A stretch of 63,320 nt of DNA, the filler included, from Syncephalis fuscata S228 (lineage: Eukaryota > Fungi > Zoopagomycota), in the NCBI GenBank assembly GCA_025786725.1. It is 4 parts of 4 records of this genome, joined end to end, with 100 filler letters (N's around TTAATTAATTAA, not from the genome) between each part and the next. Parts side by side here need not be neighbours in the genome. Positions count along the whole stretch, not along the records: positions 1 to 31,464 come from JAHLTZ010000086.1; 3 more parts are not named here. One strand, written 5' to 3'. The translations under genes and the position numbers were made by a program. A model generated the notes under the pieces. The model ran no database searches and was not told the DNA's origin. It worked only from the letters and a program-made list of their open reading frames with translations. Of this stretch, positions 1,027 to 30,790 are shown piece after piece. Each line of letters starts with the position of its first letter. Within the stretch, counting starts at the first letter, position 1.

Positions 1027-3400
1027 TTATTTAGCATTCTTTTTGCTAAAACGGACCTTGCGAGGTGGCAGACTCCCTTTGTTTTTGACGCACAATGTCT
1101 TGTATTTGGAATAACGGATGCGTTTTGGACTGCGGGTTGGAGGACTAGGTGCTATATGCCGCCGTGTTCCTGTTACCCGTGGTGGCGATACACGTGCTGG
1201 TGCTGGTGCAACAGCTACTGCTGGCGTGACCGGTGGAGCTGTTACCGGTGTAGTAGCTGTTGCTGTTGGTGGTGGAGCTGTTACTGGTGTAGTAGCTGTT
1301 GGTGGTGGTGGCTGTAATGCTGGTGGTGGAGGTGGAGGTGGAGGCGGTGGTGCTGGTGCTGATCCATTGTTGAACCAAGAACAGTTCAATGCCTGGGCGA
1401 CGGTATACCGTGTGGTACTATCTAGATCTAGTAATCCTTCCATCAATTGAATGGCTGCAGTGTATTAGTTAATGTTAATAAAAAATATATAACTTACCTT
1501 GATTACTTAACCCGTTGATTCTTCCCCGGCCAAATGTGGGCGGATTCTGTAGTATACGCCTCATATACATAGATTGGGTCTTTACTATGCTATATGGGCA
1601 GCGTCCTAATTAACAGTATTAAACAGTTAGTATTTGCTTTTGTTTTTGTTTGCACTTACCCAGTAACATCGTATGGAGCGTTGCTCCCAAGCCCCACATA
1701 TCGGCGGGCTTTCCATACCCCTTAGCATTCAACAATGCTGAAGGTAGCCGATCTTTGGCCCCAGGCATGCTTTTGATGATATCCTCCATATTCTCCCGCC
1801 TATTAGTTCCCAAAAGCACCTCAGGTGCCATGTAGGCAACTGTGCCGCAAAAAGTGGTCACAGTTAGTGAAGGAGGGAGAATGCATGCCATCCCAAAGTC
1901 TGTAAATACGACTCTGGGACCCCCCTGGCCACCAAACAACAGCATGTTGTCGGGCTATTTAAATGTTAGCAATAATTACAAATATTTAATAAATACTTAC
2001 TTTGATATCTAAATAACAATAGTAATAATAGTAATAATAGTAATAATAGTGATTAGTGATTATATTAATTAATAGGTTAATGTATTTACCACGATGAATG
2101 ATATTCATGCTATGAAGGTGCTAATAAAATGTTAGTATTTTAATTAATGTTTTATACTAGTACTTACTTGAATACCTTCAAGCAGCTGTTTAAAGATATA
2201 TTTTGCTTCCATCTCTGGAAGTGGGGCTTTTGAGACGATGTGATTAATTAGATCACCGCCTGTTGCGTACTCAAGAGACAAGTACGTGTTCAGGGCGGTG
2301 ACCGTACCATCTAAAAAGCCTATTACGCCAGGGTGGTTACCCACCGCACGTAATGTGGCGACTTCATTATTGAAGCTTTTAAGGCCGCTTCCTTTTGATG
2401 ATACTTTGACCGCAACACGTTCGCCTGTGCTGCGGTCAAATCCCATGTAGACTTGGCCAAAAGCGCCCCTAATATAAATAATTAGTAGCTAATTAGTTAG
2501 TTTAATTTATTACTTACTCTCCAATGGGCTTATCAACAAGCATGAACTTCTGGTTGATTTTCTATAACATTAATAAAATAATATTAGCAATATTTAAATA
2601 TAATTGTAAACTTACCTTTTCGTATTCTTTGCTGTCTTCTATTTTTACAGGCTTATAATGTTTAATGATGTATATATTAAACGTTACTGCCACGCATAAT
2701 TAGAAATAATCATAAATAATCACTTGTCACTTACTATTGTGGCCAGGTATTGTGACAACACAATCACCAGCAACTCTTCTTGACTCACTGGCACTCAATT
2801 CAATATTATTGACTAAAATAATTGTTAGTGAAATAATTACTATTACTTGTTTAAACTAACCCATTAAAACATCTAGTTCAATGTTCTAAATCACTAATTA
2901 GTATTAATAATGTTAAATGCCCATTTACTTACTTTGAATGTAATAAAACCATTCGACTATAATAATTCATAATTAGTACCCATTTATCAATGCAAAATAT
3001 TATACTTACTACTAAAAATTTGAAGCATTGATCTGGCAAAGATGCATTATTCAGGCGGACGTTGCTGTTTAAATGTGTATGATATTAGCTTATTATTTAT
3101 GTATTGTTTTAAATAATTACCAGCCTTGATCGGACCCAACAGTATAACTCCTATTTCTTATCAACAGAATTTCTAAATAAACACTAGTTAGATATATTTA
3201 TACTTAGTATTGTTTAACTTACTTCTAGATCCTGCTTCATGGATTCTAGCCCATGCAATGGTGTTAGCACGCATGGGCATAGACAGAGTGTTCCAGATTT
3301 CTGGAACGTTATAAAACATCAAATCCTCATCACTTAGAAGATTTAATGGCTGTTGAACAGCAACAGCAGCTGGGGCGGTTGGGGCGGAAGTAGAAGACAT
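1027..3400 (-). CDS. FHA-domain + Ser/Thr protein kinase (Chk2/Rad53/Mek1-like), many introns, Pro-rich tail
   Basis: Spliced reading gives IGEGAFGQVY, VAVK, HRDIKPDN, DFG, GTVAYMAPE, ADMWGLG. N-terminal exons read YTVGSDQGC..VNN.EL..GD.V.I (FHA-like). Canonical gtaagt/ag introns. Confidence 0.85.
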
Positions 3401-3534
3401 TTTTATAAAATATAAAATAAAAATGAGTAAATGGGTAAATTTCAAGTTGAAAGTTATAAACTGGAAGTAGAGCTGTAGAAAAAGTAAGGTAAACAATTAT
3501 GTATTGCTCTTTCGTTTATTTAAATATTTACAGC

Positions 3535-4060
3535 ATTATAGTAGCAATTAATGTTGAAGCCAATGCCGCAATTGCAATCAGTATTCTAAGAATCATCAGA
3601 ATGCAAATCAGCGTGGAAGGCAATACAGCAATGCCAACTGATATTCTAAAAAGGTATAATACCAATCAGTATTCTAGGAAATATTGTAATGCCAACTAGC
3701 ATTGGATGCAATGTCACAACACCAACCATTATTCTAGGAAGCATTGCAATGCAAATCAGTATTGAAGACAAAGCTACAGTGCCAACCAGTATTTTAAAAA
3801 AAGCACAATGTAAATCAGTATGGAAGGCAACATCACAATGTAATTTTTTATTCTAAAAATATTACAATGTCAATCAGTACTGGATGCAATGTTAGAATGC
3901 CAACCAGTGCTGAAGACGATGTTATGTTGCCAATCAATATAGAAAGCATTGCCACAATGTAAATCATTATTGACTGCAATGCTACAATGCCAACCAGTAT
4001 TCTAAGAAATAGTACAATGCCAACCAGTATAGAAGGTGATACAAGAATAACAATGTAGGC
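3535..4060. repeat. degenerate ~30-bp tandem array upstream of the kinase
   Basis: Core 'atgc(c/a)a(a)(c/t)cagta(t/c)t' recurs about every 30 nt, roughly 17 units. Confidence 0.65.
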
Positions 4061-5230
4061 AAACAATGCTTTTAAAAGACACAAAAAGCCCATGTGGATA
4101 AATGGTTTATTTTTAGTGTAGCAAACAGGCAAATTACTAGCCAACAATCAAAGCGCCAACCGCAGCAAATAAAGAAACAGCTACAAATAAACCATTGATG
4201 CCATTGAATGCTACAACACAAAGAAAAGACTAACAGCGTGCTGCAGACTTTATAGTGACAGTGAAATAAGGGCATTGTTTTGCATGATGCATAGTAGCAT
4301 CAAAGTATTGTTCTTAAATGGTGCAGAATGGCATCAGATTATTGGTTCCAGGCGATGCAAGTGGCAGCAAACTATTGTTCTTGAATACCATTTTGCGTCA
4401 TCATATTGATACAATATTGCAAATAATGGCAATGACAGCAGAACATTGTTCCTAGATAACACAAAATGGCATATCATTGATACAGTCATCCAAATACACA
4501 GTTTATTTGTTTAAAAATAGAACATTCGGAGCAATGCTTTGTCTTATTCAAAATATGGCATTCTATGGCCATAAGCTGAACTAGAAACTATACCAGGAAC
4601 TGGGTAATTAGCTTTTATCGCCTTTGTATGCTGTAGGCTAAACGAAGTCTATCTAGAAGAACGGCCATACATATAATAATTAACACTTGTAAACATATTT
4701 TAGCAAGCTAAAAAGAATATGTTTTTATTTATCAACATCTTAAACCATCTTATACACCAGTTCAAGTAGTTATGTACAAATAGATTGGTAAAATAAATAG
4801 TAAAATAAATAAATATAACATTTTTGCAAACATTAACCATTTAGTATGATTTAATGGCCAAATGACTACATCTAATAACATTTGTTTTATTAAACATAAA
4901 AATGGGTGGTAAATGATGTCAGTCATCAAATACTCATCATCGTAGATCAATTATCCAGTATGCATATATCTTCTATCCATTTATATCATTTCCATTGTAT
5001 ATCCATACAACTATATACTATTCTATGATATACAGACAATATATATTTGTTATATATATTAAATCGTTTTATTGCTTAATAAATAATATAGCTTCAATGT
5101 TGCTATTTATACTTTCTCATTGTATATTTATGATATTCTATAACTGTATAATACATTAGATATGCGCTAGCTAAAACTGCTGTTCATTTGACACTATTTT
5201 GTTATTTATAAATATCAACTCATTTATTTT

Positions 5231-6284
5231 ATTAAATCACTAGCAATACAGTTGCGATGTTGTTATTCATTCACATGCTTATCATTCTGCTATAGAATAG
5301 ACATAAACTGTTAATAAAATATTTATTGCTACCTGTATTTATAATTGACATGGAAGCACACTTCAGTATAACTGGATGGACAATCGAGTCAACCGACTGG
5401 TGCAGATATGATTGTTTTGTGGACAAGTGTAGAATAAAAAAGGGACTATCATCTGATCTAGTGGTGAAATGGCATCCGTGCACCAAAATGGTCCAGCCAG
5501 GCGCAATACACCAATAAACAGTCGCCATGTACTCTACCAATATTGTCCATTCTAATTGGTGGATATATTTTGGAATAAGCTTATAAGGCTGTGCTGAGCG
5601 TACTTTTGCTCATTACTTCGCTTTCTCTTGTTTCTAGTTGTTAATATGCTGTAAACTGCTTGTTAATGGAAGCATCTGTTCTAGTAGCTATATCCAGTGG
5701 TGAGTGGTCTCCTTGTTGGTTGATCACGATATACTGCGTTATGCATTTGAGCTGTGTTGAATGTAGAATACAGTAGTGCAGACTACTGTGCTATACTAGC
5801 TCAGCAACTATATGGTTGCCTGTACTAGGCAGCTGTATACTGGCATAGTGCGGAGATATGTGGGATAACAGGGTGTGCAGTACTGTGTTTAGCAAGTCAG
5901 TATTGCTGTGCACTCCCCTCATGTTGATGCGGCGACCCGTATGGGTGGTCATATGTTAGTGCTCACTTGTATTGAACGTGCACTGGAGGTGTGTTTGATA
6001 GCCTTCAACTTGCTGAATACTATCATCGCACACTAGACTGGTGTGATATGTGGCTTATTCGTACTGAATACCATGCATTACACTGTTTACTTGTGGGTGT
6101 TGTTAAACGATTGTAATAGAACACTAGTCGCCATACCATTTTAGTTTTCAACTGCCGTGCTAGATACTCTATACAACACTGACATAAACAAGGACTAACG
6201 ACCGAAAACAAATGGCATCTCTACTACTAATAATGTCTTAGCGTAGACTGGTTACTATATTACAATCATTTAATGACATATCAG
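5231..6284 (+). pseudogene. degenerate 28S (LSU) rRNA domains IV-VI segment
   Basis: In canonical order: attaaa.ca.tagca..ttgcgatg (H65-66), gtc..gac..gtgca (H71), gtgaaa, actcta..attgt..gaataag, catctgtt 5673, gggataacagg 5862 (PTC), tgctcac 5960 (A-loop-like), gaacgtg 5974, gaggtgtgttt 5986, tacaatc 6261. Confidence 0.65.
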
Positions 6285-6540
6285 TATATGGTGATGTGCT
6301 GTTTAGTTGTAATATGTTGTGGTGCTCATGTGTTCAGCTCTAGACATCAACTACAAATGGGTGAATCCATAGTTTGGTGCAGCTTATTGCTACGCTTGAA
6401 TTACCATGGCATCTTGTAACATTTATTGAACAGCATCGCCATCAAGATAGCAGCTAATATAGAGCTGTACGCATCCGACAAATATTACTTACGCCCAAGT
6501 CGTAGTAGTGTCGGTACTCCAGGTGGACGTATAGTTGCTG
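6285..6540 (+). pseudogene. degenerate 18S rRNA 5' end fused to 18S 3' end (middle deleted)
   Basis: tatatggtgat ~UAUCUGGUUGAU; agttgtaatatgttgt ~AGUAGUCAUAUGCUUGU; aactacaaatgg ~AACUGCGAAUGG; ctacgcttgaattaccatgg ~CUACUUGGAUAACCGUGG; agctaata; then cgccc-aagtcgta and tccaggtggac ~UCCGUAGGUGAAC. Confidence 0.6.
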
Positions 6541-6561
6541 TATTAGCTGCTATCTTGTTTA

Positions 6562-6730
6562 ACAACTTTTAACAACATTTCTAGTTTATTTGTATAGCAG
6601 ATAACAACAATACACAAACAACTACACTCGTGTACACTATAAACTATACGCAAGGAACAATCAACTAGATGTAGGTGCTTATTACTACTAAACAATACTA
6701 ACGCACTTTTATTATAGCTATTCAAGCATT
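6562..6730 (+). pseudogene. degenerate 5.8S rRNA segment
   Basis: acaacttttaacaac (6562-6576) matches the 5.8S 5' start as recalled for zygomycetes; aacgcac 6700-6706 ~GAACGCAC at the expected distance. Confidence 0.6.
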
Positions 6731-6734
6731 GGTG

Positions 6735-7260
6735 CCGGATCAACAAGTATATCTGAACTGCATTTGTTATCGGACACAAATATTTTGCATGCAACTTACA
6801 ATACCAACTATAGAATTCGTTGGCACAAGCATTGACAACAATACTGTATACTGTCGTTGGTACTATTGTTTGGACCGGATTCTAAATGGGACATATACTT
6901 ATCTGGTTTATATTACCCAACACTAACTGGCATTGCTATTGCGCATCTGCTAAATGCTTTGGTTTGATTGAAGTGGTGGTAATAAAGAGGGAGGTGGTGG
7001 GCATTACACATATATTACATTGAAATGGTAGATTTAATAAAGAAGCGCATGAGGTGTTTGCTGAATCGACATAACACTGTGACTCCATTACTAGTTTGTC
7101 TAATGTTGTGCTTATTATGTTTAATAAAACTATAATACTGGTACATGTATTCAATTAAAGTCACTGATACTTGAATGGCTAGATTACAAGTAGCTACATT
7201 CAATACTGCATCTACGCCAACTATTTTAATAATAGTGCCAATGATTTATTTATTGCTGTG
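6735..7260 (+). pseudogene. degenerate 28S rRNA 5' segment (domain I into D2)
   Basis: ctgaactgcat..cgga ~CUGAACUUAAGCAU..GCGGA (6753-6774); ttgtttgg 6866; tctaaatggg 6881; tgaaatggtaga..gaagcgc ~UGAAAUUGUUGAAAGGGAAGCGC (7021-7048). Confidence 0.6.
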
Positions 7261-7272
7261 TTATTTATTGCC

Positions 7273-8131
7273 ATTTAACATGATCCAGTGGTCAAATGGC
7301 TGCATTTAATAGCATCTAATCTATTGAACATGATGATGGGTGGTGAGTGACATCAATCATCAAATACTTATCGTTGTAGATTCATTATCCAGTATGCATA
7401 TATTTAGTACACATATACTTTATTCACCTATATCATTCTATTTTATTCTATAATGATATATATCATTTTATAACATACTAGACACATTCTATTGTTTATA
7501 TGTTTCAATATACTTTATTCACACCACTCATTATGCTATACACACTATAGCTTTGACATCGTTTTATATGCTTTCTCACCGTACATTTACCATTTTATAT
7601 ACTATTCTATACTCGCCTAGTCTTCCTTTATCCAGAACTGCTTTTATGTTTGTTCTAGCTTTATTATTAATAAATCTTGACTAATTCTGCTCATTGGTCA
7701 TGCATATATTTTCAACAACTTTGACACTACTAATCGTCACTTTAGTTTGGATATTCATTATACAACTTTATTGATTTATTACACAAGAGCTACGAACCGA
7801 CTAAAGTCGCTGTCCGTCTGGTTCTAGCTGTATTATTGATAAAGCTTAGTTCATTTACTCGTTAGTCTATATATACTTGAGATTTATAGCAAATGGGCTG
7901 TCTACTATGTGATATAATGATATATAGTAGTGTGGAATAAAATGGGAATGATATAGGTGAATAAAGTATATGTGTACTGAATATATGCATACTGGATAAT
8001 GAATCTACAACGATGAGTATTTGATGATTAATGCCATTCACCACTCATCATTATGTTCAATAGATTAAATGTCCACTTCAATTATGCAAATATTATATAT
8101 GTAGTCATTTGACCACCAGATCACATCAAAT
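7273..8131. mobile_element. non-autonomous TIR element (MITE-like), ~860 bp with ~150-200 bp imperfect TIRs
   Basis: Left arm ...tcaaatggctgcattt...atcaaatact...ttatccagtatgcatata mirrored by ...tatatgcatactggataatg...gagtatttgat...gtagtcatttgacc; many related copies in the window. Confidence 0.75.
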
Positions 8132-8484
8132 CTTCAATAAGCTGTCTATTGATCTTTCATATCATTCGGTCTCATATTCAATAATGTTACGTGGTGTAGC
8201 TGTCATCGCAACAAACAACATTATTTACCTATCTGCTACAGGTAGCGCAAATGTAATAATCGTATAGCAGATAAGTAATTCTTATGGGCAAATACATAAG
8301 ACGGCTATAGCAAGTATGATATGACTTATTAGTTGCTACAGCATAGCTGTATTTACATAATAATACATCATTTTTGAGACAATGTTACGCATCATAGAAT
8401 GATCTTTATAAAAACGGCAATTTATATGTAACATAGCCTTTGTAACACAGGTTTATAAAATTTATTCCATTCAAGTCTGATATA

Positions 8485-9892
8485 TTAGTTCACGCTTGGC
8501 GTAGCTGTATGTTTATCAATCCATTCAACAATTGTTTTAAAGAAATCCTCCTTTTCAAGTTCGTTGTGTACTATGCAAATAAGTTAGATTAATACACACA
8601 CGCCATTATCAATATGCAAATGCTATCATACCTTCATGGCGGTTTTCTTCTAATAAAAGCAGTGTTTTATCCAAGTCCTCTGGCAGCTTATTAAAGAATT
8701 CCTGACTCGAATCCGGACTGAACAGCATCAGCAGTGTTAGATGACGGATTATATTAATAGACATTATCGTGCGACATACCATGTAATCTCGTCATGAGTG
8801 CCGTGAACTAGGAGCAATGGTGTTTTAAAAGTTGCATATCTCTTATTGAGCAAAGCATCGCCATTCTCCAACACATCTTTGACTATATCATACAATGTAA
8901 TGAGTACCATCAATAAATAGATGTCTATTAACTTACGAGTGCGCAATGTTGAATGGCTAATGTTATATTCACTAGCCTTGTAAGCAGTAACCACTTCAGA
9001 ATCGCGAGTTAGGTTGTTATGATCTAGCAGCGGTAAAAGAAACACCTCAATAAGTATTGTGTGGATCAGATATTGCAAAGCATTTTACCAAAGCCCGGAT
9101 CCATGTGAAAAGTCGGCATAATCTTTGCCAATAAAGATGCAGTTGTGCGTAGAAAAGTGCCGGGGCGTACCCTCTTGCCCGTTTGAATGGCAGGACCTAG
9201 GCCACATGGCTTTAGTTTTGATGCATTGTGCATCAATTAATATCACTCACCCGTGCTAATGATACCATCGATGGGGTCCTTTTCAGCGCGAAGTGCGCCA
9301 TAATTAAGCACAATCATACCACCCATTGAATGGCCATACTAATTCAATAATAACGGCAAATTAATCAAATGTGGGCCCATTGTCTAATAATAGATTTACC
9401 AAAAAGTGTGGCACGCCTTTGATACGCGCTCGCTTGTTTGCGGCTTCTACATCATCGAGTACCTTCTTGAATCCTTCAGTGTGTCCCAAAATACCATTTC
9501 GAAGACCGGTTTTGCCATATCCACGCTGGTCATAACCATGCGACTGAATGCCAGCCTGTGCTAGTACTCGCATAATTTGATCGTATCGGTCAATATGCTC
9601 ACCAAGACCGTGAATAAATGTCACAGTTGCCTTGGCCGATTCATTTTTGGGCTATTCAAAACATACTAAAATAAGCCGACACATATTGTTGCAGACCAGC
9701 AAAGCTTACCGCGTAAGTAACCGTGTAAAACTGGTGTCTGTCATGCTCTATCCAAGCCTCAGTACGGAGAATCTCATCGTCTTCCAAATTAACTTTGGTA
9801 TTCTCAACAGTCGTATTTTGAGTGTCTGTTTCAAGGACGGCTTCTACCAGGAGTTTCTCTCTGGCAGTAGCAGGAGTAGCAGTGTCAGTCAT
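8485..9892 (-). CDS. monoglyceride lipase / lysophospholipase (alpha/beta hydrolase, Yju3-like), spliced
   Basis: HGLGEH, DQRGYG, GHSMGG nucleophile elbow, LLVHGTHD, C-terminal HE.HNE. Confidence 0.85.
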
Positions 9893-13879: not shown

Positions 13880-16735
13880 TTAAATTTGTTAATAATGAAG
13901 TTAGAACAAACATAAAAGCAGTTCTGGATAAAGGAAGACTAGGCGAGTATAGAATAGTATATAAAATGGTAAATGTACGGTGAGAAAGCATATAAAACGA
14001 TGTCAAAGCTATAGTGTGTATAGCATAATAAGTGGAGTGAATAAAGTATATTGAAACATATAAACAATAGAATGTGTCTAGTATGTTATAAAATGGTATA
14101 TATCATTATAGAATAAAATAGAATGATATAGGTGAATAAAGTATATGTGTACTGAATATATGCATACTGGATAATGAATCTACAACGATGAGTATTTGAT
14201 GATTGATGTTACTCACTATCAACTAGCATGTTCAATAGATTAGATGCTATTAAATGTAGCCATTTGACCACCGGATCATGTTAAATGGCAATAAATAAAA
14301 CAGCAATAAATAAATCATTGGCACTATTATTAAAATAGTTGGCGTAGATGCAGTATTGAATGTAGCTACTTGTAATCTAGCCATTCAAGTATCAGTGACT
14401 TTAATTGAATACATGTACCAGTATTTTAGTTTTAATAAACATAATAAGCACAACATTAGACAAACTAGTAATGGAGTCACAGTGTTATGTTGATTCAGCA
14501 AACACCTCATGCGCTTCTTTATTAAATCTACCATTTCAATGTAATATATGTGTAATGCCCACCACCTCCCTCTTTATTACCACCACTTCAATCAAACCAA
14601 AGCATTTAGCAGATGCGCAATAGCAATGCCAGTTAGTGTTGGGTAATATAAACCAGATAAGTATATGTCCCATTTAGAATCCAGCCCAAACAATAGTACC
14701 AACGACAGTATACAGTATTGTTGTCGATGCTTGTGCCAACGAATTCTATAGTTGGTATTGTAAGTTGCATGCAAAATATTTGTGTCCGATAACAAATGCA
14801 GTTCAGATATACTTGTTGATCCGGCACCAATGGTTGAATAGCTATAATAAAAGTGCGTTAGTATTGTTTAGTAGTAATAAGCACCTACATCTAGTTGATT
14901 GTTCCTTGCGTATAGTTTATAGTGTACACGAGTGTAGTTGTTTGTGTATTGTTGTTATTTGTTATACAAATAAACTAGAAATGTTGTTAAAAGTTGTTAA
15001 ACAAGATAGCAGCTAATATAGCAACTATACGTCCACCTGGAGTACCGGCAATACTACGACTTGGGCGTAAGTAACATTTGTCGGATGCGTACAGCTCTAT
15101 ATTAGCTGCTATCTTGATGGCAATGCTGTTCAATAAATGTTACAAAATGCCATGGCAATTCAAGCGTAGCAATAAGCTGCACCAAACTATGGATTCACCC
15201 ATTTGTAGTTGATGTCTAGAGCTGAACACATGAACACCACAACATATTACAACTAAACAGCACATAGCCATATACTGATATGTCATTAAATGATTGTAGA
15301 ATAACTGCTAGCTTTCTCTACAATACAATCGATAGTAGAGCTACAATTCTATTTCAGTCGCCATTGCAGAGGACCTTCGGTCAGTCAAATTAATTTTCGT
15401 GTAACGCAGTCGAAAATCAAACAGTATGGTAGCTAGTGTTATTACAATCGTTTAACAACACCCACAAGTAAACAGTGTAATGCATGGTATTCAGTACGAA
15501 TAAGCCATATATCACACCAGTCCAGTGTGCAATGATAGTATCAGCAAGTTGAAGGCTATCAAACACACCTCCAGTGCACGTTCAATACAAGTGAGCACTA
15601 ACATATGACCACCCATACGGGTCGCCGCATCAACATGAGGGGAGTGCCAGCAATACTGACTTGCTAAACACAGTACTGCACACCCTGTTATCCCACATAT
15701 CTCCGCACTATGCTAGTATATAGCCGCCTAGTGCAGGCAACCATATAGTTGCTGAGCTAGTATAACACAATAGTCTGCACTATTGTACTCTACATTCAAC
15801 ACAGCTCAAATGCATAACGCAGTATATCGTGATCAACCAACAAGGAGGTCACACACCACTAGATATAGCTACTAGAACATATGCTTTCAGCAACAAGCGG
15901 TTTACAGCATATTAACAACTAGAAACAAGAGAAAGCGAAGTAATGAGCAAAAGTACGCTCAGCACAGCCTTATAAGCTTATTCCAAAATATATCCACCAA
16001 TTAGAATGGACAATATTGGTAGAGTACATGGCGACTGTTTATTGGTGTATTGCGCCTGGCTGGACCATTTTGGTGCACGGATGCCATTTCACCACTAGAT
16101 CAGATGATAGTCCCTTTTTTATTCTACACTTGTCCACAAAACAATCATATCTGCACCAGTCGGTTGACTCGATTGTCCATCCAGCTATACTGAAGTGTGC
16201 TTCCATGTCAATTATAAATACAGGTAGCAATAAATATTTTATTAGCAGTTTATGTCTATTCTATAGCAGAATGATAAGCATGTGAATGAATAACAACATC
16301 GCAACTGTATTGCTAGTGATTTAATAAAATAAATGAGTTGATATTTATAAATAACAAAATAGTGTCAAATGAACAGCAGTTTTAGCTAGCGCATATCTAA
16401 TGTATTATACAGTTATAGAATATCATAAATATACAATGAGAAAGTATAAATAGCAACATTGAAGCTATATTATTTATTAAGCAATAAAACGATTTAATAT
16501 ATATAACAATATATATTGTCTGTATACCATAGAATAGTATATAGTTGTATGGATATACAATGGAAATGATATAAATGGATGGAGGATATATGCATACTGG
16601 ATAATTGATCTACGATGATGAGTATTATGGACCCTGGCATGATTTACCACCCATTTTCATATTCAATAAAACAAATGTTATTAGATGTAGTCATTTGGCC
16701 ATTAAATCATACTAAATCATTTGTGTTTATTTATA
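13880..16735 (-). mobile_element. composite repeat copy B (inverted; distal MITE truncated)
   Basis: Reverse complement of 20765-23938, nearly identical but lacking the SINE. Confidence 0.85.
14300..16318 (-). ncRNA. rRNA-derived structured element, copy B
   Basis: Reverse-complement copy of 21522-23540. Confidence 0.7.
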
Positions 16736-16804
16736 AAAGAAAGCCAAGATTAACTACAACGATTACTATTTCTTAATTTCTGTCGCGTCAATTATTAATG
16801 GTAT

Positions 16805-19121
16805 TTAATCACGTAACAATGATTGCACTACATGTGGCACATTCATGCCTTTAAGATCGGTGTAAGTTTGACCAGTGCCAACAAATAGAATAGGCTGACC
16901 AGTAATAAATGTCATTGACAATGCAGCGCCAACCTAATAGCAATAACAATAGCGTGTTAGTCAGAACAAATAGTCAATATTAAATAGCTAGAGCATTAAT
17001 GTAAAGCATACCTTATCATCTATAGTATCAAATTTTGTTAATATAATACCATCAATTTGACGCGGATGCTGTAGTCCAGAGAAGTCTTTTAATGCTTGAT
17101 TGAATTTAGTTAATTGATCGACAGCCTCATTACCCACTAATGCTTCTCCTACAAATATAATCTTGTCAGGATTATTGACACTGACAAGCTATAGGCCATG
17201 ATTAGTAAACACTACACCAACAAATATGATTAAATAAGCTACCTTGGACAAGGATCGCATTAATGGTTCATTATCTTGCATACGTCCTGCTGTATCCACC
17301 AAAACTACATCGAATTTATTGGCCTTGGCTATTATACATTACATTAATAATTGTGTTTTAGTCGGTACTAATCTATTGATAAATTAAAACTTACCATAAC
17401 TAATGGCATCTTTGGCAATACCTGCCGCATCTTTACCATAGCCACGTTCATACAATTCAATACGGGCCGTCTTTTCAAGTGCACACAAATTACGTGCATG
17501 TACACGCAGCTGTTCTACTGCACCTGATCTAAATGTATCACACGCAGCAATAAGCACGCTAAGCTTATTTTGAAGTAGCCAGAAGCATGTTTTTGACAAA
17601 TTGGTCGATTTACCAACGCCGTTGACACCGACAAACACCATTGTGTAAGGGCGATGCTCATCACGAGCGGCAAATACATCACGTAGTACATCGAGTGAAG
17701 TACGTGGTGTAAGAATACGAGTTACTGCCGTCTCCATTTGTCGCTTCACTTCTGCCTTTACACCTTTACATCACCAAACAATATTAGTTGTCAGGTAGAC
17801 CATTGAGCCATAAACCTACTCTTGAATGTACCAAGTCGACGACCTACAATACCGCTAGAAATAGATTCACACAAATGGTCAGCAATATGAGCTGCAACAT
17901 TCTTATTAACTAAATGCTCTTTCATTGCTCTCATCACTGGTGCCAAATCCGATTCAGTCACCGCCGCTTGACCAGTAATACGTTGGAAGAATGACATCAT
18001 ACCACTTGGTCCAGCTTCATTATGGCCGTCGTCATCATCATCATCCTCTTCGTCGTCGGAATTGCCCATAGTACGAACATTGTATATGCCACCCGATATT
18101 TGTTCGCCCAATGCTGATCGATCAATCTATCGAAATACATCAATATTATTGGCAACATTACCATTTATTGCACTTACCAATCGCTCTGCATCAATCGTAT
18201 TATTTGCCGTAAGATCACTTTGACCGCTAAAATCAAGTGTTTTTGCTTGTTCTTCATTATACGTGTCATCCCATACTCGTGGCTTACGTGCTGAGTTCTT
18301 TGATTCTCTATCGTCGCTCGTTATAAACAAATATAGCCAGTAAATATTGATTAGCTTACTTTTTGGGTTTATCCTTATTACCACGTCTTCCTTTGCCATG
18401 TCTCTGTACTCTTGGTGAATCCACACCGACTTGTTCGTCCTCATCGTCATTAGTTTCAGATGCATGGCTGGATGCACTTGTATTGACCTTTTTGCCTACA
18501 CCATTTAATAAACAATTGAATATTCTATTAAAGCCTAATTACCTTTACCACGGGATGCTTCCAATGTATTCTGATACTTTTTAGTTTCCTCAAATCGACG
18601 CGGTGCTTTGGTGGCACGAGACTAGTGATAATAAACATCAGTGTCACAGTACTATGGGTTTATATACTTACTGAATACTCTCGTTCCTCTAGTTTCCGCG
18701 TAATATTGTTATATTTAATATCGAATTTGGCAAACTGATCTTGTGGCAGTACGATGGTTAAGCAGCTAACCAAAATGTCGGAAAACATGTCGGTGAATGC
18801 CCGTCGTACGCCAAGTAACAAATCTTCTACATAGGCTAACTGTAGAATCTTTTGGTAAACTGCCTGATAACACTAGTAGTTAGACCAACTGTATAGATAT
18901 AGGTATATACAGGTTCAACCTACTACAAAGACAAGATTCAGTTCATTGGCCAACGTCCACTGTACGGTATAAGAGCCACTTTCAAAAGCCCGTTGTCCTG
19001 TACGCTCCTCCACTAATACTTCGCGTACCAGATCATCTACTGGATTGCTTTGTAGCGGTGAGAAGGAACTCGACCACAGAACTATACCGCCTCGAGTGAA
19101 GATTGTGAAATGATCCAGCAT
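16805..19121 (-). CDS. SRP101: signal recognition particle receptor alpha subunit, spliced
   Basis: [16 protein letters not shown] longin start; [45 protein letters not shown]. Confidence 0.93.
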
Positions 19122-19271
19122 GTTTGAATAGATGCAAGTAAAAGGTACGTAAGAATAGTAATATTAGTAAACGAAAAGCGATAACAGTCAATGATAACCA
19201 ATAAACACCAGTTTCAAAAAGTCAATGATAATCAACAATAAAGGTCTGATGGTAATTAGGTGATTAATTGT

Positions 19272-19568
19272 CTAATAATGATTATAATAATGTGAAGAAA
19301 TAGAAGTATTTATTTTTTTTGAAGCTGTCGTCGATGCTGATGGCACTAGCTTATCTGCAATCGTTGAACTAGTTGTGCTTGCCTTATTGGCAGTGTTAGA
19401 AGCCTCTTTAGCTGTATCTTGGTCGACGGCCTGTTTGACACACTCTTTAACTTGCTTAGTTGCATCAGATTGGTTATTGTTTGCAGTAGTAGGCATTGGC
19501 GGTGGCTGGTCATGGAAAGGTGGCTGTTGCGCCATCTCTTTACGCAATGCATCGATATTCAGTGGCAT
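19272..19568 (-). CDS. small hypothetical low-complexity protein
   Basis: ATG-initiated ORF (MPLNIDALRKEM...) with protein-like composition; no recognisable domain. Confidence 0.35.
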   Translation of the reverse strand: MPLNIDALRKEMAQQPPFHDQPPPMPTTANNNQSDATKQVKECVKQAVDQDTAKEASNTANKASTTSSTIADKLVPSASTTASKKINTSISSHYYNHY

Positions 19569-20042
19569 ATTGAACGAATAAAACAGTAAAGTATACAAGA
19601 TGAATCAAGTGATAATTGCGTGAAAATTAGCTTTATTGCGTTTTATAAATGAATTGCTTCACAACAGTAGATTGAATTAAAATTACGTCATTACTGTTTC
19701 AGTTTGGTTTATATATAATTATATTGCTCTATTTGTTTGACTGTAATATGTCACTCAATATTGATGACCTGCGTAAGTTGTGTAACAAAATGTAATATTA
19801 AAAGATGGCATTCAAAATGTAAAACAAAAAGGAACAAAGGGGTAGGACGAAAACAGCAATAACAAGAAATGATGCTTAAAGGCAGTAGAAAAAAAAGGGT
19901 ATATTTATGATGACAGATATAAACCACATGATGCAATGATCTCGCACACTGCCTGCTTTTACGTATAAATAGAGTCATATTGCACCCAGCATTTGAAATA
20001 AAAATAAGTCCTTTCTATTATTTGAATTTGTTTTATCAGAAA

Positions 20043-20553
20043 TTGTGTGCGCTATCCCGACCCCTGATAACAATGACACCACAGTTGGTGAAGAGTCCGG
20101 GCATGTAGCCATCCTTTACCATTGTCATTGATTATTCGATTTTGCGCTAGCTAATGTCCTGGCCTAAGCCAGTTGGTAAACTTGGTCGTTGGTCCTTAAA
20201 GTTACAAGAATACCGACTCACGATGGAACATCGTCGCGGCATTGGAAATGATAACGCTGCACCATTGCTGTGTTATGTGTAACAAACAGTTTATTTGATG
20301 ACAGGAAAAGGCGTAAATTAAACGTTTTTCATATTAATACCGCACTCGTTATTATATACAATTGGCATAACAAGCACCGTCACATATGAGCTGATTGGAT
20401 TAATTGAGCAAGACAAAATTGAAAAGTGATGTATATATTTAAATTGCAACACCATTGTTAATGGACGGTGGAGAAAGAATGGGAGCATGCCCAGGTCCTC
20501 CACCAATTGTTGTGTCTTTATTATTGGGGAGGGGGTCAGGATAATACTCACAA
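20043..20553. mobile_element. ~510-bp element with ~90-bp imperfect terminal inverted repeats
   Basis: 20043-20131 aligns to the reverse complement of 20458-20553 (tatcc.gacccct, gacac.aca.ttggtg, gggcatg). Confidence 0.6.
20112..20267 (+). pseudogene. Ty3/Gypsy RNase H C-terminal fragment
   Basis: Translates SFTIVIDYSILR*LMSWPKPVGKLGRWSLKLQEYRLTMEHRRGIGNDNAAPL, matching the Gypsy pattern F.I.TDH..L.WL..RW...LQEY...HR.G..N..AD.L. Confidence 0.8.
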
Positions 20554-20828
20554 GTACTGATATACATTAATAAAACAAATTTAAATAATGAATACAGTAT
20601 ATCTTTATTTATGCATAAAACACGGCAGTGTGTAGCGTTATTGCACCACGCGGTTCATATTTTTCGCCACAGATATCAATATATTATAATTACAATTAAT
20701 TATTTAAAGATGCAATACAGAGTTGACATATTGTGTGTCATTTAATATTATTATAAATTTTGTCTATAAATAAACACAAATGATTTAGTATGATTTAATG
20801 GCCAAATGACTACATCTAATAACATTTG

Positions 20829-21148
20829 GATTTGGATTTTATTAGCTTAAGTGAGACAACGGTCCGTAGGACCTAACCGCGCATTTGCAGCATTTGTCTG
20901 CCACCCCTAGGAGAATAGACGGTTCATTTCGAACCTATCCGCGCGCAACGCAGAACCTGCCATCTACAACTGAAACCGTTGGTGGCTCTCCTCACGTGTT
21001 GGAATATCGACCATTTCTTCTACGTCGACCATTTCTTCTACGGAAGGATCCCATCACGCATTTCCTGAAAACAAGATTCGAACTAGGCGAACCAACATTT
21101 TCCTACTTTAGGGAAGACGCGTTGACCGTTTAGGCCACCACGCCTCCC
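20829..21148 (-). mobile_element. full-length tRNA-derived SINE (~320 bp)
   Basis: 20-bp TSD actacatctaataacatttg (20809-20828/21149-21168); box A TGGCCTAAACGG (21126-21137) and box B GTTCGAATC (21075-21083) on the minus strand; 3' stem-loop GGTCC-TAC-GGACC; (AAATCC)n tail. Confidence 0.88.
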
Positions 21149-21521
21149 ACTACATCTAATAACATTTGTTTTATTGAATATGAAAATGGGTGGTAAATCA
21201 TGCCAGGGTCCATAATACTCATCATCGTAGATCAATTATCCAGTATGCATATATCCTCCATCCATTTATATCATTTCCATTGTATATCCATACAACTATA
21301 TACTATTCTATGGTATACAGACAATATATATTGTTATATATATTAAATCGTTTTATTGCTTAATAAATAATATAGCTTCAATGTTGCTATTTATACTTTC
21401 TCATTGTATATTTATGATATTCTATAACTGTATAATACATTAGATATGCGCTAGCTAAAACTGCTGTTCATTTGACACTATTTTGTTATTTATAAATATC
21501 AACTCATTTATTTTATTAAAT

Positions 21522-23540
21522 CACTAGCAATACAGTTGCGATGTTGTTATTCATTCACATGCTTATCATTCTGCTATAGAATAGACATAAACTGCTAATA
21601 AAATATTTATTGCTACCTGTATTTATAATTGACATGGAAGCACACTTCAGTATAGCTGGATGGACAATCGAGTCAACCGACTGGTGCAGATATGATTGTT
21701 TTGTGGACAAGTGTAGAATAAAAAAGGGACTATCATCTGATCTAGTGGTGAAATGGCATCCGTGCACCAAAATGGTCCAGCCAGGCGCAATACACCAATA
21801 AACAGTCGCCATGTACTCTACCAATATTGTCCATTCTAATTGGTGGATATATTTTGGAATAAGCTTATAAGGCTGTGCTGAGCGTACTTTTGCTCATTAC
21901 TTCGCTTTCTCTTGTTTCTAGTTGTTAATATGCTGTAAACCGCTTGTTGCTGAAAGCATATGTTCTAGTAGCTATATCTAGTGGTGTGTGACCTCCTTGT
22001 TGGTTGATCACGATATACTGCGTTATGCATTTGAGCTGTGTTGAATGTAGAGTACAATAGTGCAGACTATTGTGTTATACTAGCTCAGCAACTATATGGT
22101 TGCCTGCACTAGGCGGCTATATACTAGCATAGTGCGGAGATATGTGGGATAACAGGGTGTGCAGTACTGTGTTTAGCAAGTCAGTATTGCTGGCACTCCC
22201 CTCATGTTGATGCGGCGACCCGTATGGGTGGTCATATGTTAGTGCTCACTTGTATTGAACGTGCACTGGAGGTGTGTTTGATAGCCTTCAACTTGCTGAT
22301 ACTATCATTGCACACTGGACTGGTGTGATATATGGCTTATTCGTACTGAATACCATGCATTACACTGTTTACTTGTGGGTGTTGTTAAACGATTGTAATA
22401 ACACTAGCTACCATACTGTTTGATTTTCGACTGCGTTACACGAAAATTAATTTGACTGACCGAAGGTCCTCTGCAATGGCGACTGAAATAGAATTGTAGC
22501 TCTACTATCGATTGTATTGTAGAGAAAGCTAGCAGTTATTCTACAATCATTTAATGACATATCAGTATATGGCTATGTGCTGTTTAGTTGTAATATGTTG
22601 TGGTGTTCATGTGTTCAGCTCTAGACATCAACTACAAATGGGTGAATCCATAGTTTGGTGCAGCTTATTGCTACGCTTGAATTGCCATGGCATTTTGTAA
22701 CATTTATTGAACAGCATTGCCATCAAGATAGCAGCTAATATAGAGCTGTACGCATCCGACAAATGTTACTTACGCCCAAGTCGTAGTATTGCCGGTACTC
22801 CAGGTGGACGTATAGTTGCTATATTAGCTGCTATCTTGTTTAACAACTTTTAACAACATTTCTAGTTTATTTGTATAACAAATAACAACAATACACAAAC
22901 AACTACACTCGTGTACACTATAAACTATACGCAAGGAACAATCAACTAGATGTAGGTGCTTATTACTACTAAACAATACTAACGCACTTTTATTATAGCT
23001 ATTCAACCATTGGTGCCGGATCAACAAGTATATCTGAACTGCATTTGTTATCGGGCACAAATATTTTGCATGCAACTTACAATACCAACTATAGAATTCG
23101 TTGGCACAAGCATCGACAACAATACTGTATACTGTCGTTGGTACTATTGTTTGGGCTGGATTCTAAATGGGACATATACTTATCTGGTTTATATTACCCA
23201 ACACTAACTGGCATTGCTATTGCGCATCTGCTAAATGCTTTGGTTTGATTGAAGTGGTGGTAATAAAGAGGGAGGTGGTGGGCATTACACATATATTACA
23301 TTGAAATGGTAGATTTAATAAAGAAGCGCATGAGGTGTTTGCTGAATCAACATAACACTGTGACTCCATTACTAGTTTGTCTAATGTTGTGCTTATTATG
23401 TTTATTAAAACTAAAATACTGGTACATGTATTCAATTAAAGTCACTGATACTTGAATGGCTAGATTACAAGTAGCTACATTCAATACTGCATCTACGCCA
23501 ACTATTTTAATAATAGTGCCAATGATTTATTTATTGCTGT
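21522..23540 (+). ncRNA. rRNA-derived structured element, copy C
   Basis: As copy A; also agctaccatactgtttgattttcgactg (22406-22433) ~28S AGCUACCAUCUGUGGGAUUAUGACUG and gtattgtag..tagcagttattctacaatc ~28S 3' end. Confidence 0.7.
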
Positions 23541-24514
23541 TTTATTTATTGCCATTTAACATGATCCAGTGGTCAAATGGCTGCATTTAATAGCATCTAA
23601 TCTATTGAACATGCTAGTTGATGGTGAGTGACATCAATCATCAAATACTCATCGTTGTAGATTCATTATCCAGTATGCATATATTCAGTATACATATACT
23701 TTATTCACCTATATCATTCTATTTTATTCTATAATGATATATATCATTTTATAACATACTAGACACATTCTATTGTTTATATGTTTCAATATACTTTATT
23801 CACACCACTCATTATGCTATACACACTATAGCTTTGACATCGTTTTATATGCTTTCTCACCGTACATTTACCATTTTATATACTATTCTATACTCGCCTA
23901 GTCTTCCTTTATCCAGAACTGCTTTTATGTTTGTTCTAGCTTTATTATTAATAAATCTTGACTAATTCTGCTCATTGGTCATGCATATATTTTCAACAAC
24001 TTTGACACTACTAATCGTCACTTTAGTTTGGATATTCATTATACAACTTTATTGATTTATTACACAAGAGCTACGAACCGCCTAAAGTCGCTGTCCGTCT
24101 GGTTCTAGCTGTATTATTGATAAAGCTCAGTTCATTTACTCGTTAGTCTATATATACTTGAGATTTATAGCAAATGGGCTGTTTACTATGTGATATAATG
24201 ATATATAGTAGTGTGGGATATAATGAGAATGATATAGACGAATAGAAGATATATGTGTATTGAATATATGCATACTGGATAATAATCTATGATGATGAGT
24301 ATTTGATGATTGATGTCACTCACCACCCATCATCATGTTCAATATATTGAATATTATTAAATGTAGCCATTCAATCCTCATATCATACTAAATGTTAATT
24401 ATATAATATGCTATATGTCATGTAACATTATTATACACTTTTTATGAACAATTTATTAGCATTTTCTATTTAACTTAATATTTAATTCATATTAATTATT
24501 ATCGGTTACAAGCA

Positions 24515-26693: not shown

Positions 26694-27075
26694 ACTTTAA
26701 AATATATAAAAGAGGAATTCAAACTATGTAATAAAACGAGCTGCAAATGGTTTTGTTTTTTAACAAACAAAAGCGATGATCAATCGCTGTTACCATCTTA
26801 ACTTGTTATTACCATATTTAGAACAATAAATTATTTGGTTCCCACATTAAGAATCATAGCTGTATATATTTGCCATATTCCAGGCGTTTTTTACTTGTGC
26901 AAAATGTGGTTATACAACTAATTAATTTTTATTATCAATAAAAAATATCCAAGACCTTCTTACATCATTACACACATTATATTTTATAGCTGCATCACAG
27001 TTAATTGCAATTATTATGCTTGTTATTGTAACGATTGTTACTAGGTAGCACTTATTATGGTTTTATTACAATTGT

Positions 27076-27185
27076 ATCTACAATGATGAGTATTTGATGC
27101 CTGATGTCATTCACCACCCACCATTATGTTCAATAGGTTGGATGTTATTAAATACTAGCCATTTGATCACCAAAGTGTATTAAAT
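27076..27185 (-). repeat. solo MITE arm
   Basis: atctacaatgatgagtatttgat...caccacccaccattatgttcaata...agccatttga, same family as 7273-8131. Confidence 0.75.
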
Positions 27186-27308
27186 TATTATTATTGTTAT
27201 TTACTTGTAAAAGACAAGATTAAATATTACTGTCTAAATAAAACAATAAAATCAGTTTAATTCGTTTATTGGTCTAAATTTAGTTATTACATGGTAACAG
27301 ATATTGTG

Positions 27309-29801: not shown

Positions 29802-30790
29802 ATGGACCGACTTTCATATCGTGCTAGTGCATCGTCTTCCTATGACAGACAGCACTATGCATACAGTGCTGGTAGTAGTACTCAGCACGTTTTTGATCGT
29901 GTAATAGCACATACACCAACTGTGGACAGTCTATTACGTAATCAGATGATTGTAGATGAGTATGACTTGTATGGAGAGCATCCTTCGCTACTGTCCTCGG
30001 AACTTACCGATGATGATGATCACTATATTAGCGACGAGGCCGAGGAGGAGGCTAATAAAGAAAACATTGAGCCTGCAAAGGCTACGCCTTCACAAGCTGC
30101 GCCTCCTACTAGACTGCCACGGCTATCGGATGTACCAGAACTAATGGCAATGTATCGACGTACCAACCGAGCTCATAGTACCCGAGTACCATCTAGTACA
30201 CGGCCTGCAACTCGTCGAGTAGTACCAGCACGTCCACAGCCTGCAACTCGTCGACAAGAATCAACGCGTCCACAGCCTGCAACTCGGCAGGTAGAACCGG
30301 CACATCCACAACCAGTAATCCGTCGACAAGAACCAATCATTATGGAGGACGATATTTTACACAAGTATCACCATCTTTATATGCGGAAACTCCTCCTACA
30401 ACTCCATGCCAACAGTCACATGCTGTTGCTATGCATATTCCACCTGTAACTTGTCCGGTGTACGATCATCCATCACAACACCAGTCAACATCGACCAGTT
30501 CCTCGTCCATGAATGTTGACGACGAAAGTTGCAGTGACGAATGTTACGACATTGACTACGATGCCGATGTATCTTGGAATAGCAGTGGCGGCGTTATAGA
30601 TCAACGCCACTTGCAATACAATTTCAACCGCAGGATTGAAGCAGATTTATTCGACACTATTTCTGATACAGAAAATAATGAACCGTCACGGTCCAATAAG
30701 CGTCGCCGCACTCACGACCACAATGGGTCACGAAGTCAAGTGGCAACTCGACGAAATCACGTCGAGTTCCAATTGCTTAAGTTGGTATAA
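29802..30790 (+). CDS. disordered hypothetical protein with 12-aa repeats; apparent frameshift near 30355
   Basis: EEEANKENIEP, repeated RPQPATRR; protein-like continuation (QVSPSLYAETPP...) lies in another frame. Confidence 0.5.

Follow-up and report, generated by a model that had tools for sequence, protein, structure and literature searches.

A dispersed family of probable genes for a large, structured and spliced non-coding RNA in the mycoparasitic fungus Syncephalis fuscata

GOLLD, ROOL and OLE are large structured non-coding RNAs (ncRNAs) of bacteria and phages, sometimes very abundant, that lack introns and RNA polymerase II signals. In fungi, telomerase RNA is a structured polymerase II transcript of 1-2 kb, single-copy and rare, whose 3' end is sometimes made by the spliceosome, and the internal domain of large retrotransposon derivatives (LARDs) reportedly keeps a conserved RNA structure. 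To our knowledge, RNAs longer than 1 kb with covariation-supported structure are rare in eukaryotes outside ribosomal RNA (rRNA), telomerase RNA and the RNAs of viruses and retroelements. Here we analyze a locus of the fungus Syncephalis fuscata S228, found on a joined stretch of DNA of 63,320 nt (hereafter the window, whose coordinates are used throughout; positions 1-31464 derive from GenBank record JAHLTZ010000086.1). The region of interest, 5238-7260, lies inside one copy (copy A) of a repeated unit with at least 65 family members in the genome, and we consider it probable that these are genes for a new large structured ncRNA.

The family resembles each of several described systems in part. 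With GOLLD, ROOL and OLE it shares a large multi-domain fold supported by covariation and the absence of any biochemical role readable from sequence, but it is eukaryotic, has at least 65 genomic copies, contains introns and matches no Rfam model. Telomerase RNA is comparable in size class, in polymerase II anatomy and in having an intron near the 3' end; the S. fuscata RNA differs in having 65 gene copies or more and a very high depth, and no Rfam telomerase model matched it, although the telomere-template motif was not searched for. As in ribosomal DNA (rDNA) and polymerase II-transcribed small nuclear RNA (snRNA) families, many homogenized gene copies, some of them mosaics, are associated with an apparently abundant structured RNA. 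The S. fuscata copies, however, are dispersed rather than tandem and match neither rRNA nor snRNAs by sequence or by covariance model, and an RNA of 1.4 kb with spliceosomal introns and AATAAA signals is unlike the product of an snRNA gene. LARDs and other non-autonomous long terminal repeat (LTR) elements are likewise multicopy, kilobase-sized and non-coding, and the S. fuscata unit is also flanked by direct repeats. These repeats nevertheless share only 71% identity and form a family of their own (1,213 first-look candidates genome-wide), no primer-binding site or purine tract was seen on inspection, the RNA, served by its own CCAAT/TATA region, starts approximately 560 nt inward of the left repeat, and older copies lack the repeats altogether. 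The family belongs to none of the LARDs, the large bacterial RNAs or the rDNA and snRNA families.

Gene anatomy, transcription and family size

Transcription was assessed on contigs of a public run with the same organism label (X2; its "RNA?" mark is a guess), 1,323 of which map to 4000-8500, and the same stretch was compared in a public DNA run (X1). The + strand of 5433-7020 constitutes a self-contained gene, organized as follows.

5433-5619, + strand: conserved promoter region, with CCAAT at 5511 and 5537, an inverted ATTGG at 5555 and a TATA-like TATAAG at 5582
5620-7010, + strand: copy A transcript, ~1.4 kb before splicing; ends approximate (start ~5620, end ~6920-7020)
6671-6717, + strand: intron 1, 47 nt, GTAGGT ... 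TACTAAC branch site ... TAG; joint 6670 to 6718 in five X2 contigs, depth 25079
6747-6813, + strand: intron 2, 67 nt, GTATAT ... ATAG; joint 6746 to 6814 in three X2 contigs
6981 and 7036 (6981-7041), + strand: two AATAAA signals, where RNA depth collapses

The summed contig depth of X2 lies between 2x10^4 and 3.8x10^5 in the bins covering 5510-7019, compared with approximately 12 on the upstream side (5208-5509) and 369 on the downstream side (7020-7170). Depth in the DNA run is even across the core, at 10-58, and peaks only on a flanking high-copy repeat (1,236 at 7322-7472). Intron joints with GT..AG ends occur only in X2 and, because they read on the + strand, assign the transcript to that strand. 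The RNA is therefore spliced and far over-represented relative to its flanks in one RNA-like run, and it is apparently very abundant. The preliminary description of this locus, which had predicted + strand expression of copy A, was right in this respect, and the RNA proved to be spliced as well; its proposed circular form found no counterpart, as no back-joined joint was seen among the X2 contigs.

Several elements of this anatomy extend beyond copy A. Alignment shows that the promoter blocks are kept in copies only 70-80% identical, and homology with diverged copies begins at 5433 or earlier. The 5' site, branch site and 3' AG of intron 1 are kept in most diverged copies and are hence family-wide, whereas intron 2 is specific to a young subfamily (95-99% identical), its 3' AG being missing in diverged copies. 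Diverged copies likewise have an AATAAA at the corresponding position. The combination of a CCAAT/TATA-type region, a spliceosomal intron and AATAAA bears the marks of an RNA polymerase II gene.

All three of the copies that had been described proved to be real.

4828-7675, + strand: copy A, with homology to copy C continuing to 8070
13884-16728, - strand: copy B, 95% identical to A
21149-24352, + strand: copy C, with 95% identity to A over 4865-8070; left repeat interrupted, with a first piece at 20772-20828

Over the transcript, A and C are 94.7% identical, and B and C form an inverted pair with only 12 mismatches in 2,808 nt (99.6% identity). To gauge the family as a whole, we searched the S. 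fuscata genome (29.4 Mb in 371 contigs), which belongs to a haustorial, obligate mycoparasite of the Zoopagomycota. A P-type H+-ATPase encoded on another of its contigs matches, at 100% identity, the NCBI protein H(+)-ATPase [Syncephalis fuscata], and the proteins next in similarity come from other Zoopagales. The 2.2-kb interior of copy A yielded 60 DNA matches, at least 11 of them near-full at 95-100% identity, together with many diverged relatives that are 69-85% identical to copy A and have window ~5433-6888 as their common core. A covariance model (R1) of a single hairpin, 6446-6554, recovered 65 full-length copies, in agreement with the claim that the element is multicopy. The copies sit in AT-rich, repeat-rich DNA and many lie near contig ends, but neither the window nor any locus examined contains telomere repeats, giving no sign of a subtelomeric location. 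A second contig (C224) is 98% identical to that of the window; it carries all three of its copies with unchanged spacing and has two others in addition. C224 could represent either an allelic haplotig or a large duplication of recent date, and a few copies may therefore be allelic or assembly duplicates.

One subfamily (L021, L023, L031-L033, L035 and L036) carries an insertion of approximately 113 nt between window positions 5866 and 5877, which resembles two extra copies of the adjoining hairpin module at 5871-5915. Loose ends that begin with this insertion occur in X1 as well as in X2, and the subfamily is therefore present in both runs. Outside these data, a 245-nt contig of run X6, which has a different organism label, is identical to window 6015-6259, and five 151-nt contigs of a soil metagenome run (X7), 90-99% alike, fall within window 5535-7403; S. 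fuscata or a close relative thus seems to occur in other samples. Exact-match scans with a two-block conserved pattern and a second conserved block gave no matches in Joint Genome Institute (JGI) metagenome contigs or viral contigs, and the two-block pattern gave none in prokaryote genomes. As a control, this pattern matches 31 family loci; diverged relatives would escape such scans because exact matches are needed. Literature searches found no description of the element.

Conserved structure, coding potential and comparison with rRNA

The + strand of 5600-6130 has a predicted minimum free energy of -176.8 kcal/mol (z = -3.0), compared with -121.4 kcal/mol (z = -1.26) for the - strand. Structures were derived by consensus folding from copies that are not identical, and their pairs were then counted explicitly against slid and shuffled controls. 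The structures comprise four segments.

5673-6043, + strand: 5' domain, a nested multi-branch fold with closing helix 5673-5685 / 6032-6043 (alignment A2)
6097-6279, + strand: variable domain, a three-part basal stem around a hypervariable interior of ~125 nt (alignment A4)
6446-6554, + strand: long branched hairpin of 31 pairs (alignment A1)
6576-6996, + strand: 3' domain with long-range helices, e.g. 6731-6738 / 6927-6934 and 6867-6873 / 6916-6922 (alignment A3)

Across copies that are 70-99% identical, the approximately 218 predicted pairs of these segments are formed in 93-98% of alignment cells, against 25-61% in slid controls. The 5' domain accounts for 129 pairs in 20 helices, with 98.3% of cells paired (26-48% slid) and 20 pairs showing double changes where shuffles gave 8.7 +/- 2.1 (0/500). 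One-sided changes in this domain kept the pair 360 times and broke it 46 times. In the branched hairpin, 96.0% of cells are paired (25-54% slid) and 13 pairs are double-changed, against 6.2 expected (1/500). The 23 basal pairs of the variable domain are formed in 93.4% of cells (28-56% slid), with 14 double-changed pairs against 8.9 (1/500) and 39 pair types against 32.3 (0/500), while the 35 pairs of the 3' domain reach 93.5% (32-61% slid), with 16 double-changed pairs against 10.6 (1/500) and 94 double-changed cells against 33.4 (0/500).

The two strands differ in this respect as well. In alignment A2, reading the - strand instead of the + strand would lower the share of paired cells from 98.3% to 79.3%, and G-U pairs make up 19.8% of cells; the constraint therefore bears on a + strand RNA rather than on a DNA palindrome. 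The signal extends to the young subfamily: of 25 derived alleles that fall in paired columns, 21 leave the pair intact (expected 15.4 +/- 1.6; 0/500), and variation is lower in paired than in unpaired columns. Maintenance of pairs by compensatory and G-U substitutions, strand asymmetry and expression, the generic marks of a structured ncRNA, are thus all present, and the structural conservation first proposed for this locus is borne out by pairs that are kept, with covariation, across the copies.

Lying between two conserved domains, the variable domain combines constancy and divergence in an unusual manner: its length is constant (~156-162 nt), yet its interior cannot be aligned between subfamilies. 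When 23 of these interiors were folded singly, most gave an outer stem with a long hairpin and a second hairpin. Long imperfect hairpins such as these, or the one at 6446-6554, might be taken for Dicer substrates in the precursor of small RNAs that serve endogenous silencing or are delivered to the host fungus during mycoparasitism, and the occurrence of a very abundant RNA in an obligate mycoparasite would suit such a role, as would weak, sub-threshold matches of 6441-6559 to Rfam models of microRNA (miRNA) precursors. The stems, however, vary with compensation and leave no constant arm of the kind that a mature small RNA requires, and conservation spans the multi-branch fold and its long-range helices rather than the hairpins alone. 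We accordingly regard a small-RNA precursor as improbable. An miRNA-type precursor in particular was judged unlikely.

The mRNA-like anatomy of the locus, with promoter, introns and poly(A) signal, raises the question of whether the family consists of decayed protein-coding genes (pseudogenes) or of messengers for short peptides. Genomic sequence of the unit contains no open reading frame (ORF) of 100 aa or more. Copy A does contain small ORFs of 36-65 aa, but these are not common to other copies in position and frame, as judged on genomic sequence rather than across splice joints. Comparison of 14 diverged copies shows no codon periodicity, each of the three phases having an even share of the substitutions, and close copies differ by frameshifting 1-nt indels inside the transcript. 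Conservation tracks base pairing instead, and a coding origin appears very improbable. Non-coding by these measures and without an Rfam family, the RNA conforms to the initial proposal that it is a novel ncRNA.

That proposal had, in addition, interpreted the element as a miniaturized, circularly permuted derivative of the rRNA operon, on the basis of short motifs resembling conserved rRNA signatures. The motifs themselves are real: all 12 that we checked lie at exactly the coordinates given, and the motif reported near 22406 in copy C is also present. To evaluate their meaning, we used the curated covariance models of Rfam 15, including the rRNA models RF01960, RF02543 and RF00002, together with the organism's own rDNA unit, which we located on a separate contig (L013; small subunit (SSU) 1201-3179, 5.8S 3466-3618, large subunit (LSU) 3968-7705). 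As a positive control, the Rfam search recovered this true rDNA at 1789, 3173 and 124 bits. The own SSU rRNA, at 1,979 nt against a model of 1,831 positions, contains approximately 150 nt of extra sequence.

No rRNA or other family was detected at gathering score in window 1-31464, and relaxing the threshold to E<=10 over 4500-8000 produced no rRNA family and only chance-level matches with E of 2.9 or more. Four diverged copies (cores L016-L019) likewise matched no rRNA and no other family at E<=1. Searching 5238-7260 against the own rDNA with word-7 blastn gave a best score of 25.6 bits, where 60 dinucleotide shuffles averaged 25.7 and 28 of the 60 scored equally or better. Local alignment of each claimed segment with its claimed rRNA part gave z = 0.17, 0.15, 1.49 and 0.41, and the longest colinear chain of shared 7-mers numbered 22, against 21.8 +/- 1.6 in shuffles, 20 of 40 of which reached 22. 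Five of the motifs can also be found, in unchanged order and with similar spacing, in the 3' region of the organism's LSU; this recurrence is uninformative, because shuffled sequence yields colinear chains equally well.

With Rfam, BLAST, segment alignments and 7-mer chains all null, the resemblance to rRNA is not above chance, and a locus with a polymerase II-type promoter, spliceosomal introns and AATAAA signals is not what an rRNA derivative would lead one to expect. The preliminary description had made its own interpretation depend on colinear rRNA similarity above shuffled controls, and none was found, which leaves derivation from an rRNA operon and circular permutation unsupported and, in our assessment, extremely improbable. 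What stands of that interpretation is a novel, multicopy, structured + strand ncRNA; the rRNA derivation does not, and no circular form was seen. Short-motif likeness to rRNA is evidently a poor guide.

Spread of the copies and the flanking repeats

Homology between copies runs from at least 190 nt upstream of the transcription start to beyond 7060, the introns are retained, and no A-run was found at the 3' border of the copies. Since promoter and post-poly(A) sequence have been copied, introns included, and no A-tail is present, the copies were made from DNA rather than from RNA. Retroposed RNA, in the manner of a short interspersed element (SINE) or a processed copy, was rejected on the same grounds, namely copy borders that differ from the transcript ends, retention of intron 1 and lack of an A-tail. 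Some copies are mosaics: three (L024-L026) are 80% and then 97% identical to A, and another (L034) is 96% and then 69% identical, with the switch in the variable domain. Such mosaics point to recombination or gene conversion.

A second indication of DNA-level duplication comes from the neighborhood of the diverged copies. A protein-kinase paralog lies divergently upstream of the core, at a distance of 1.3-3 kb, in the window and at four other loci (L015, L016, L019 and L020), and downstream of it at another (L017). These paralogs are 45-50% identical in protein, whereas the adjoining RNA cores are 70-80% identical in DNA; the kinases are thus more diverged than the cores, which suggests that an old segment containing kinase and RNA gene has been duplicated repeatedly, and that the RNA gene evolves more slowly or has been homogenized. 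The paralogs constitute a fast-diverging family beside the RNA gene at six loci; none of our tests linked them functionally to it.

The young copies have a different setting. They are embedded in a high-copy dispersed repeat, here termed R, whose stretches in the window are the following.

4838-5055, + strand: R repeat left of copy A, outside the RNA; 71% identical to 7271-7501
7272-7501 (+ strand) and 7899-8128 (- strand): R repeats right of copy A, mutually inverted
24180-24399 and 27070-27190: further R stretches in the window

An R query returned the 1,213 first-look candidates noted above. The young subfamily sits in a unit of ~3.3 kb bounded by R, delimited in copy A by the + strand R at 4838 and the inverted R ending near 8128, and several independent copies end near there. 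Considered as a terminal-inverted-repeat transposon, this unit contains a third R copy at 7272, and R is ubiquitous. At other loci (L041-L046), R is a component of long terminal inverted repeats that measure 0.3-1.5 kb; those on C339 are 1,479 bp in length and 100% identical, while lengths of 741 bp and 854 bp were found on C157 and C168, respectively. The 5-13 kb that they enclose contain internal tandem arrays but no long ORF, so that R may belong to a family of foldback-like or decayed DNA elements. It is possible that the RNA gene is carried by an R-type element. Around the copy on contig C319, where unique sequence lies on one side and repetitive sequence on the other, no empty allele was found, and the ends of the unit are not fixed to the base.

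These observations bear on an alternative in which the family is a non-autonomous mobile element, with the structured RNA or the R-bounded DNA unit of ~3.3 kb promoting its own spread by means of helper proteins from autonomous elements, and with the structure selected for mobilization rather than for a cellular job. The same high-copy repeat flanking young copies on the left (+) and, inverted, on the right is consistent with this view, as are the existence of partial and mosaic copies and the arrangement of B and C as an inverted pair around a host gene. Against it, the discrepancy between copy and transcript borders, the retained introns and the missing poly(A) tail make retroposition of the RNA unlikely, and the transcript begins ~560 nt inward of the left repeat. 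In older copies the R frame is missing and a kinase neighbor is shared instead, as in segmental duplication; pair-preserving substitutions are found even among young copies; and neither a target-site duplication nor an empty site was established. Taken together, we consider a mobile element rather unlikely as the explanation of the family, though a serious one.

Retrotransposons with LTRs received separate attention. A near-identical LTR pair is absent, the stretches ~4837-5055 and ~7271-7501 being only 71% identical while whole copies are 95-99% alike. Inspection of the adjoining sequence, with no tRNA complementarity search, found 5056-5090 to be AT-rich without a TGG-type primer-binding site and 7235-7271 to be T-rich rather than a polypurine tract. 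No LTR-to-LTR transcript was apparent, high depth being confined to 5510-7019, inside both repeats. An LTR element, LARD or terminal-repeat retrotransposon in miniature (TRIM) was accordingly rejected. The notion that the core is itself the LTR of a larger element is not supported: the diverged copies examined adjoin host genes, including those for an H+-ATPase, a subtilase, a carboxypeptidase and kinases, and no reverse transcriptase or integrase ORF lies nearby.

Genes neighboring the copies in the window include the following.

1027-2470, - strand: protein-kinase paralog, divergent upstream of copy A (Pfam Pkinase on 2144-2446 and 1619-1945)
17384-18477, - strand: pieces of a gene resembling the alpha subunit of the signal recognition particle (SRP) receptor (Pfam SRP54, SRP54_N and SRP-alpha_N)

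The latter gene is contained in a 4.5-kb segment enclosed by the B/C inverted pair (13884-23956). Between the kinase gene and copy A, a degenerate 30-bp tandem array occupies 3546-4070, with at least 11 units that are 60-75% alike; its stretch from 4008 is common to the copy on contig C113 (L005). Three 36-bp tandem repeats at 30185-30328 lie inside an ORF (29802-30449) that has no Pfam match.

Proposed role and significance

The reading that we find best able to account for these results, and in which we have moderate confidence, is that of a family of new large structured ncRNA genes whose abundant folded product is active as RNA and probably forms the core of a ribonucleoprotein, and whose many homogenized copies supply dosage. 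The anatomy of the gene is much firmer than the role of its RNA. Under the proposed scheme, the product would function as a folded RNA, most likely at the core of an abundant ribonucleoprotein, and the many gene copies would supply it at high dosage. Copies would spread via DNA-level duplication and be kept alike by gene conversion or recombination, and the young subfamily would travel in the ~3.3-kb unit bounded by the high-copy repeat.

Several considerations weigh against this interpretation. At least 65 copies dispersed over many contigs, with a young subfamily at 95-99% identity, fit a mobile element, as does the location of copies in AT-rich, repeat-rich DNA. The structural statistics are favorable by construction to some extent: pairs were counted on the same alignments that gave the structures, which favors them over slid controls, and the shuffles overstate significance because the sequences are related. 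Furthermore, one of the two robust measures, that of further pair types, is not raised in alignments A2 (199/500) and A3 (499/500). As X2 consists of contigs whose RNA label is guessed, its depth is semi-quantitative, and transcript ends, strand and level relative to other genes are indirect; the spliced joint at intron 1 carries approximately 7% of the summed depth there. Lastly, all copies derive from one genome.

A more elaborate form of the ncRNA reading takes the behavior of the variable domain into account. It envisages a new eukaryotic ribonucleoprotein RNA in which a conserved two-domain scaffold holds a Y-shaped, length-constant hypervariable module that diversifies between copies by recombination, giving copy-specific specificities, for instance toward host-fungus targets during mycoparasitism, as an exported effector or guide; the kinase paralogs could be its partners. 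We consider this version unlikely. A comparison of the variable domain with the neighboring kinase gene in four gene pairs revealed only chance complementarity of 8-16 nt.

The family of structured ncRNA genes is set apart by the conjunction of at least 65 gene copies, a polymerase II anatomy with introns, dominant contig depth at the locus in an RNA-like run and the lack of any Rfam match. Should the RNA be cellular, it would represent an unrecognized abundant ribonucleoprotein in an early-diverging, obligately mycoparasitic fungus; should it be selfish, it would represent an undescribed type of mobile element that depends on a large folded RNA. Under either reading, the S. fuscata RNA offers a concrete target for structure probing, pull-down and localization.

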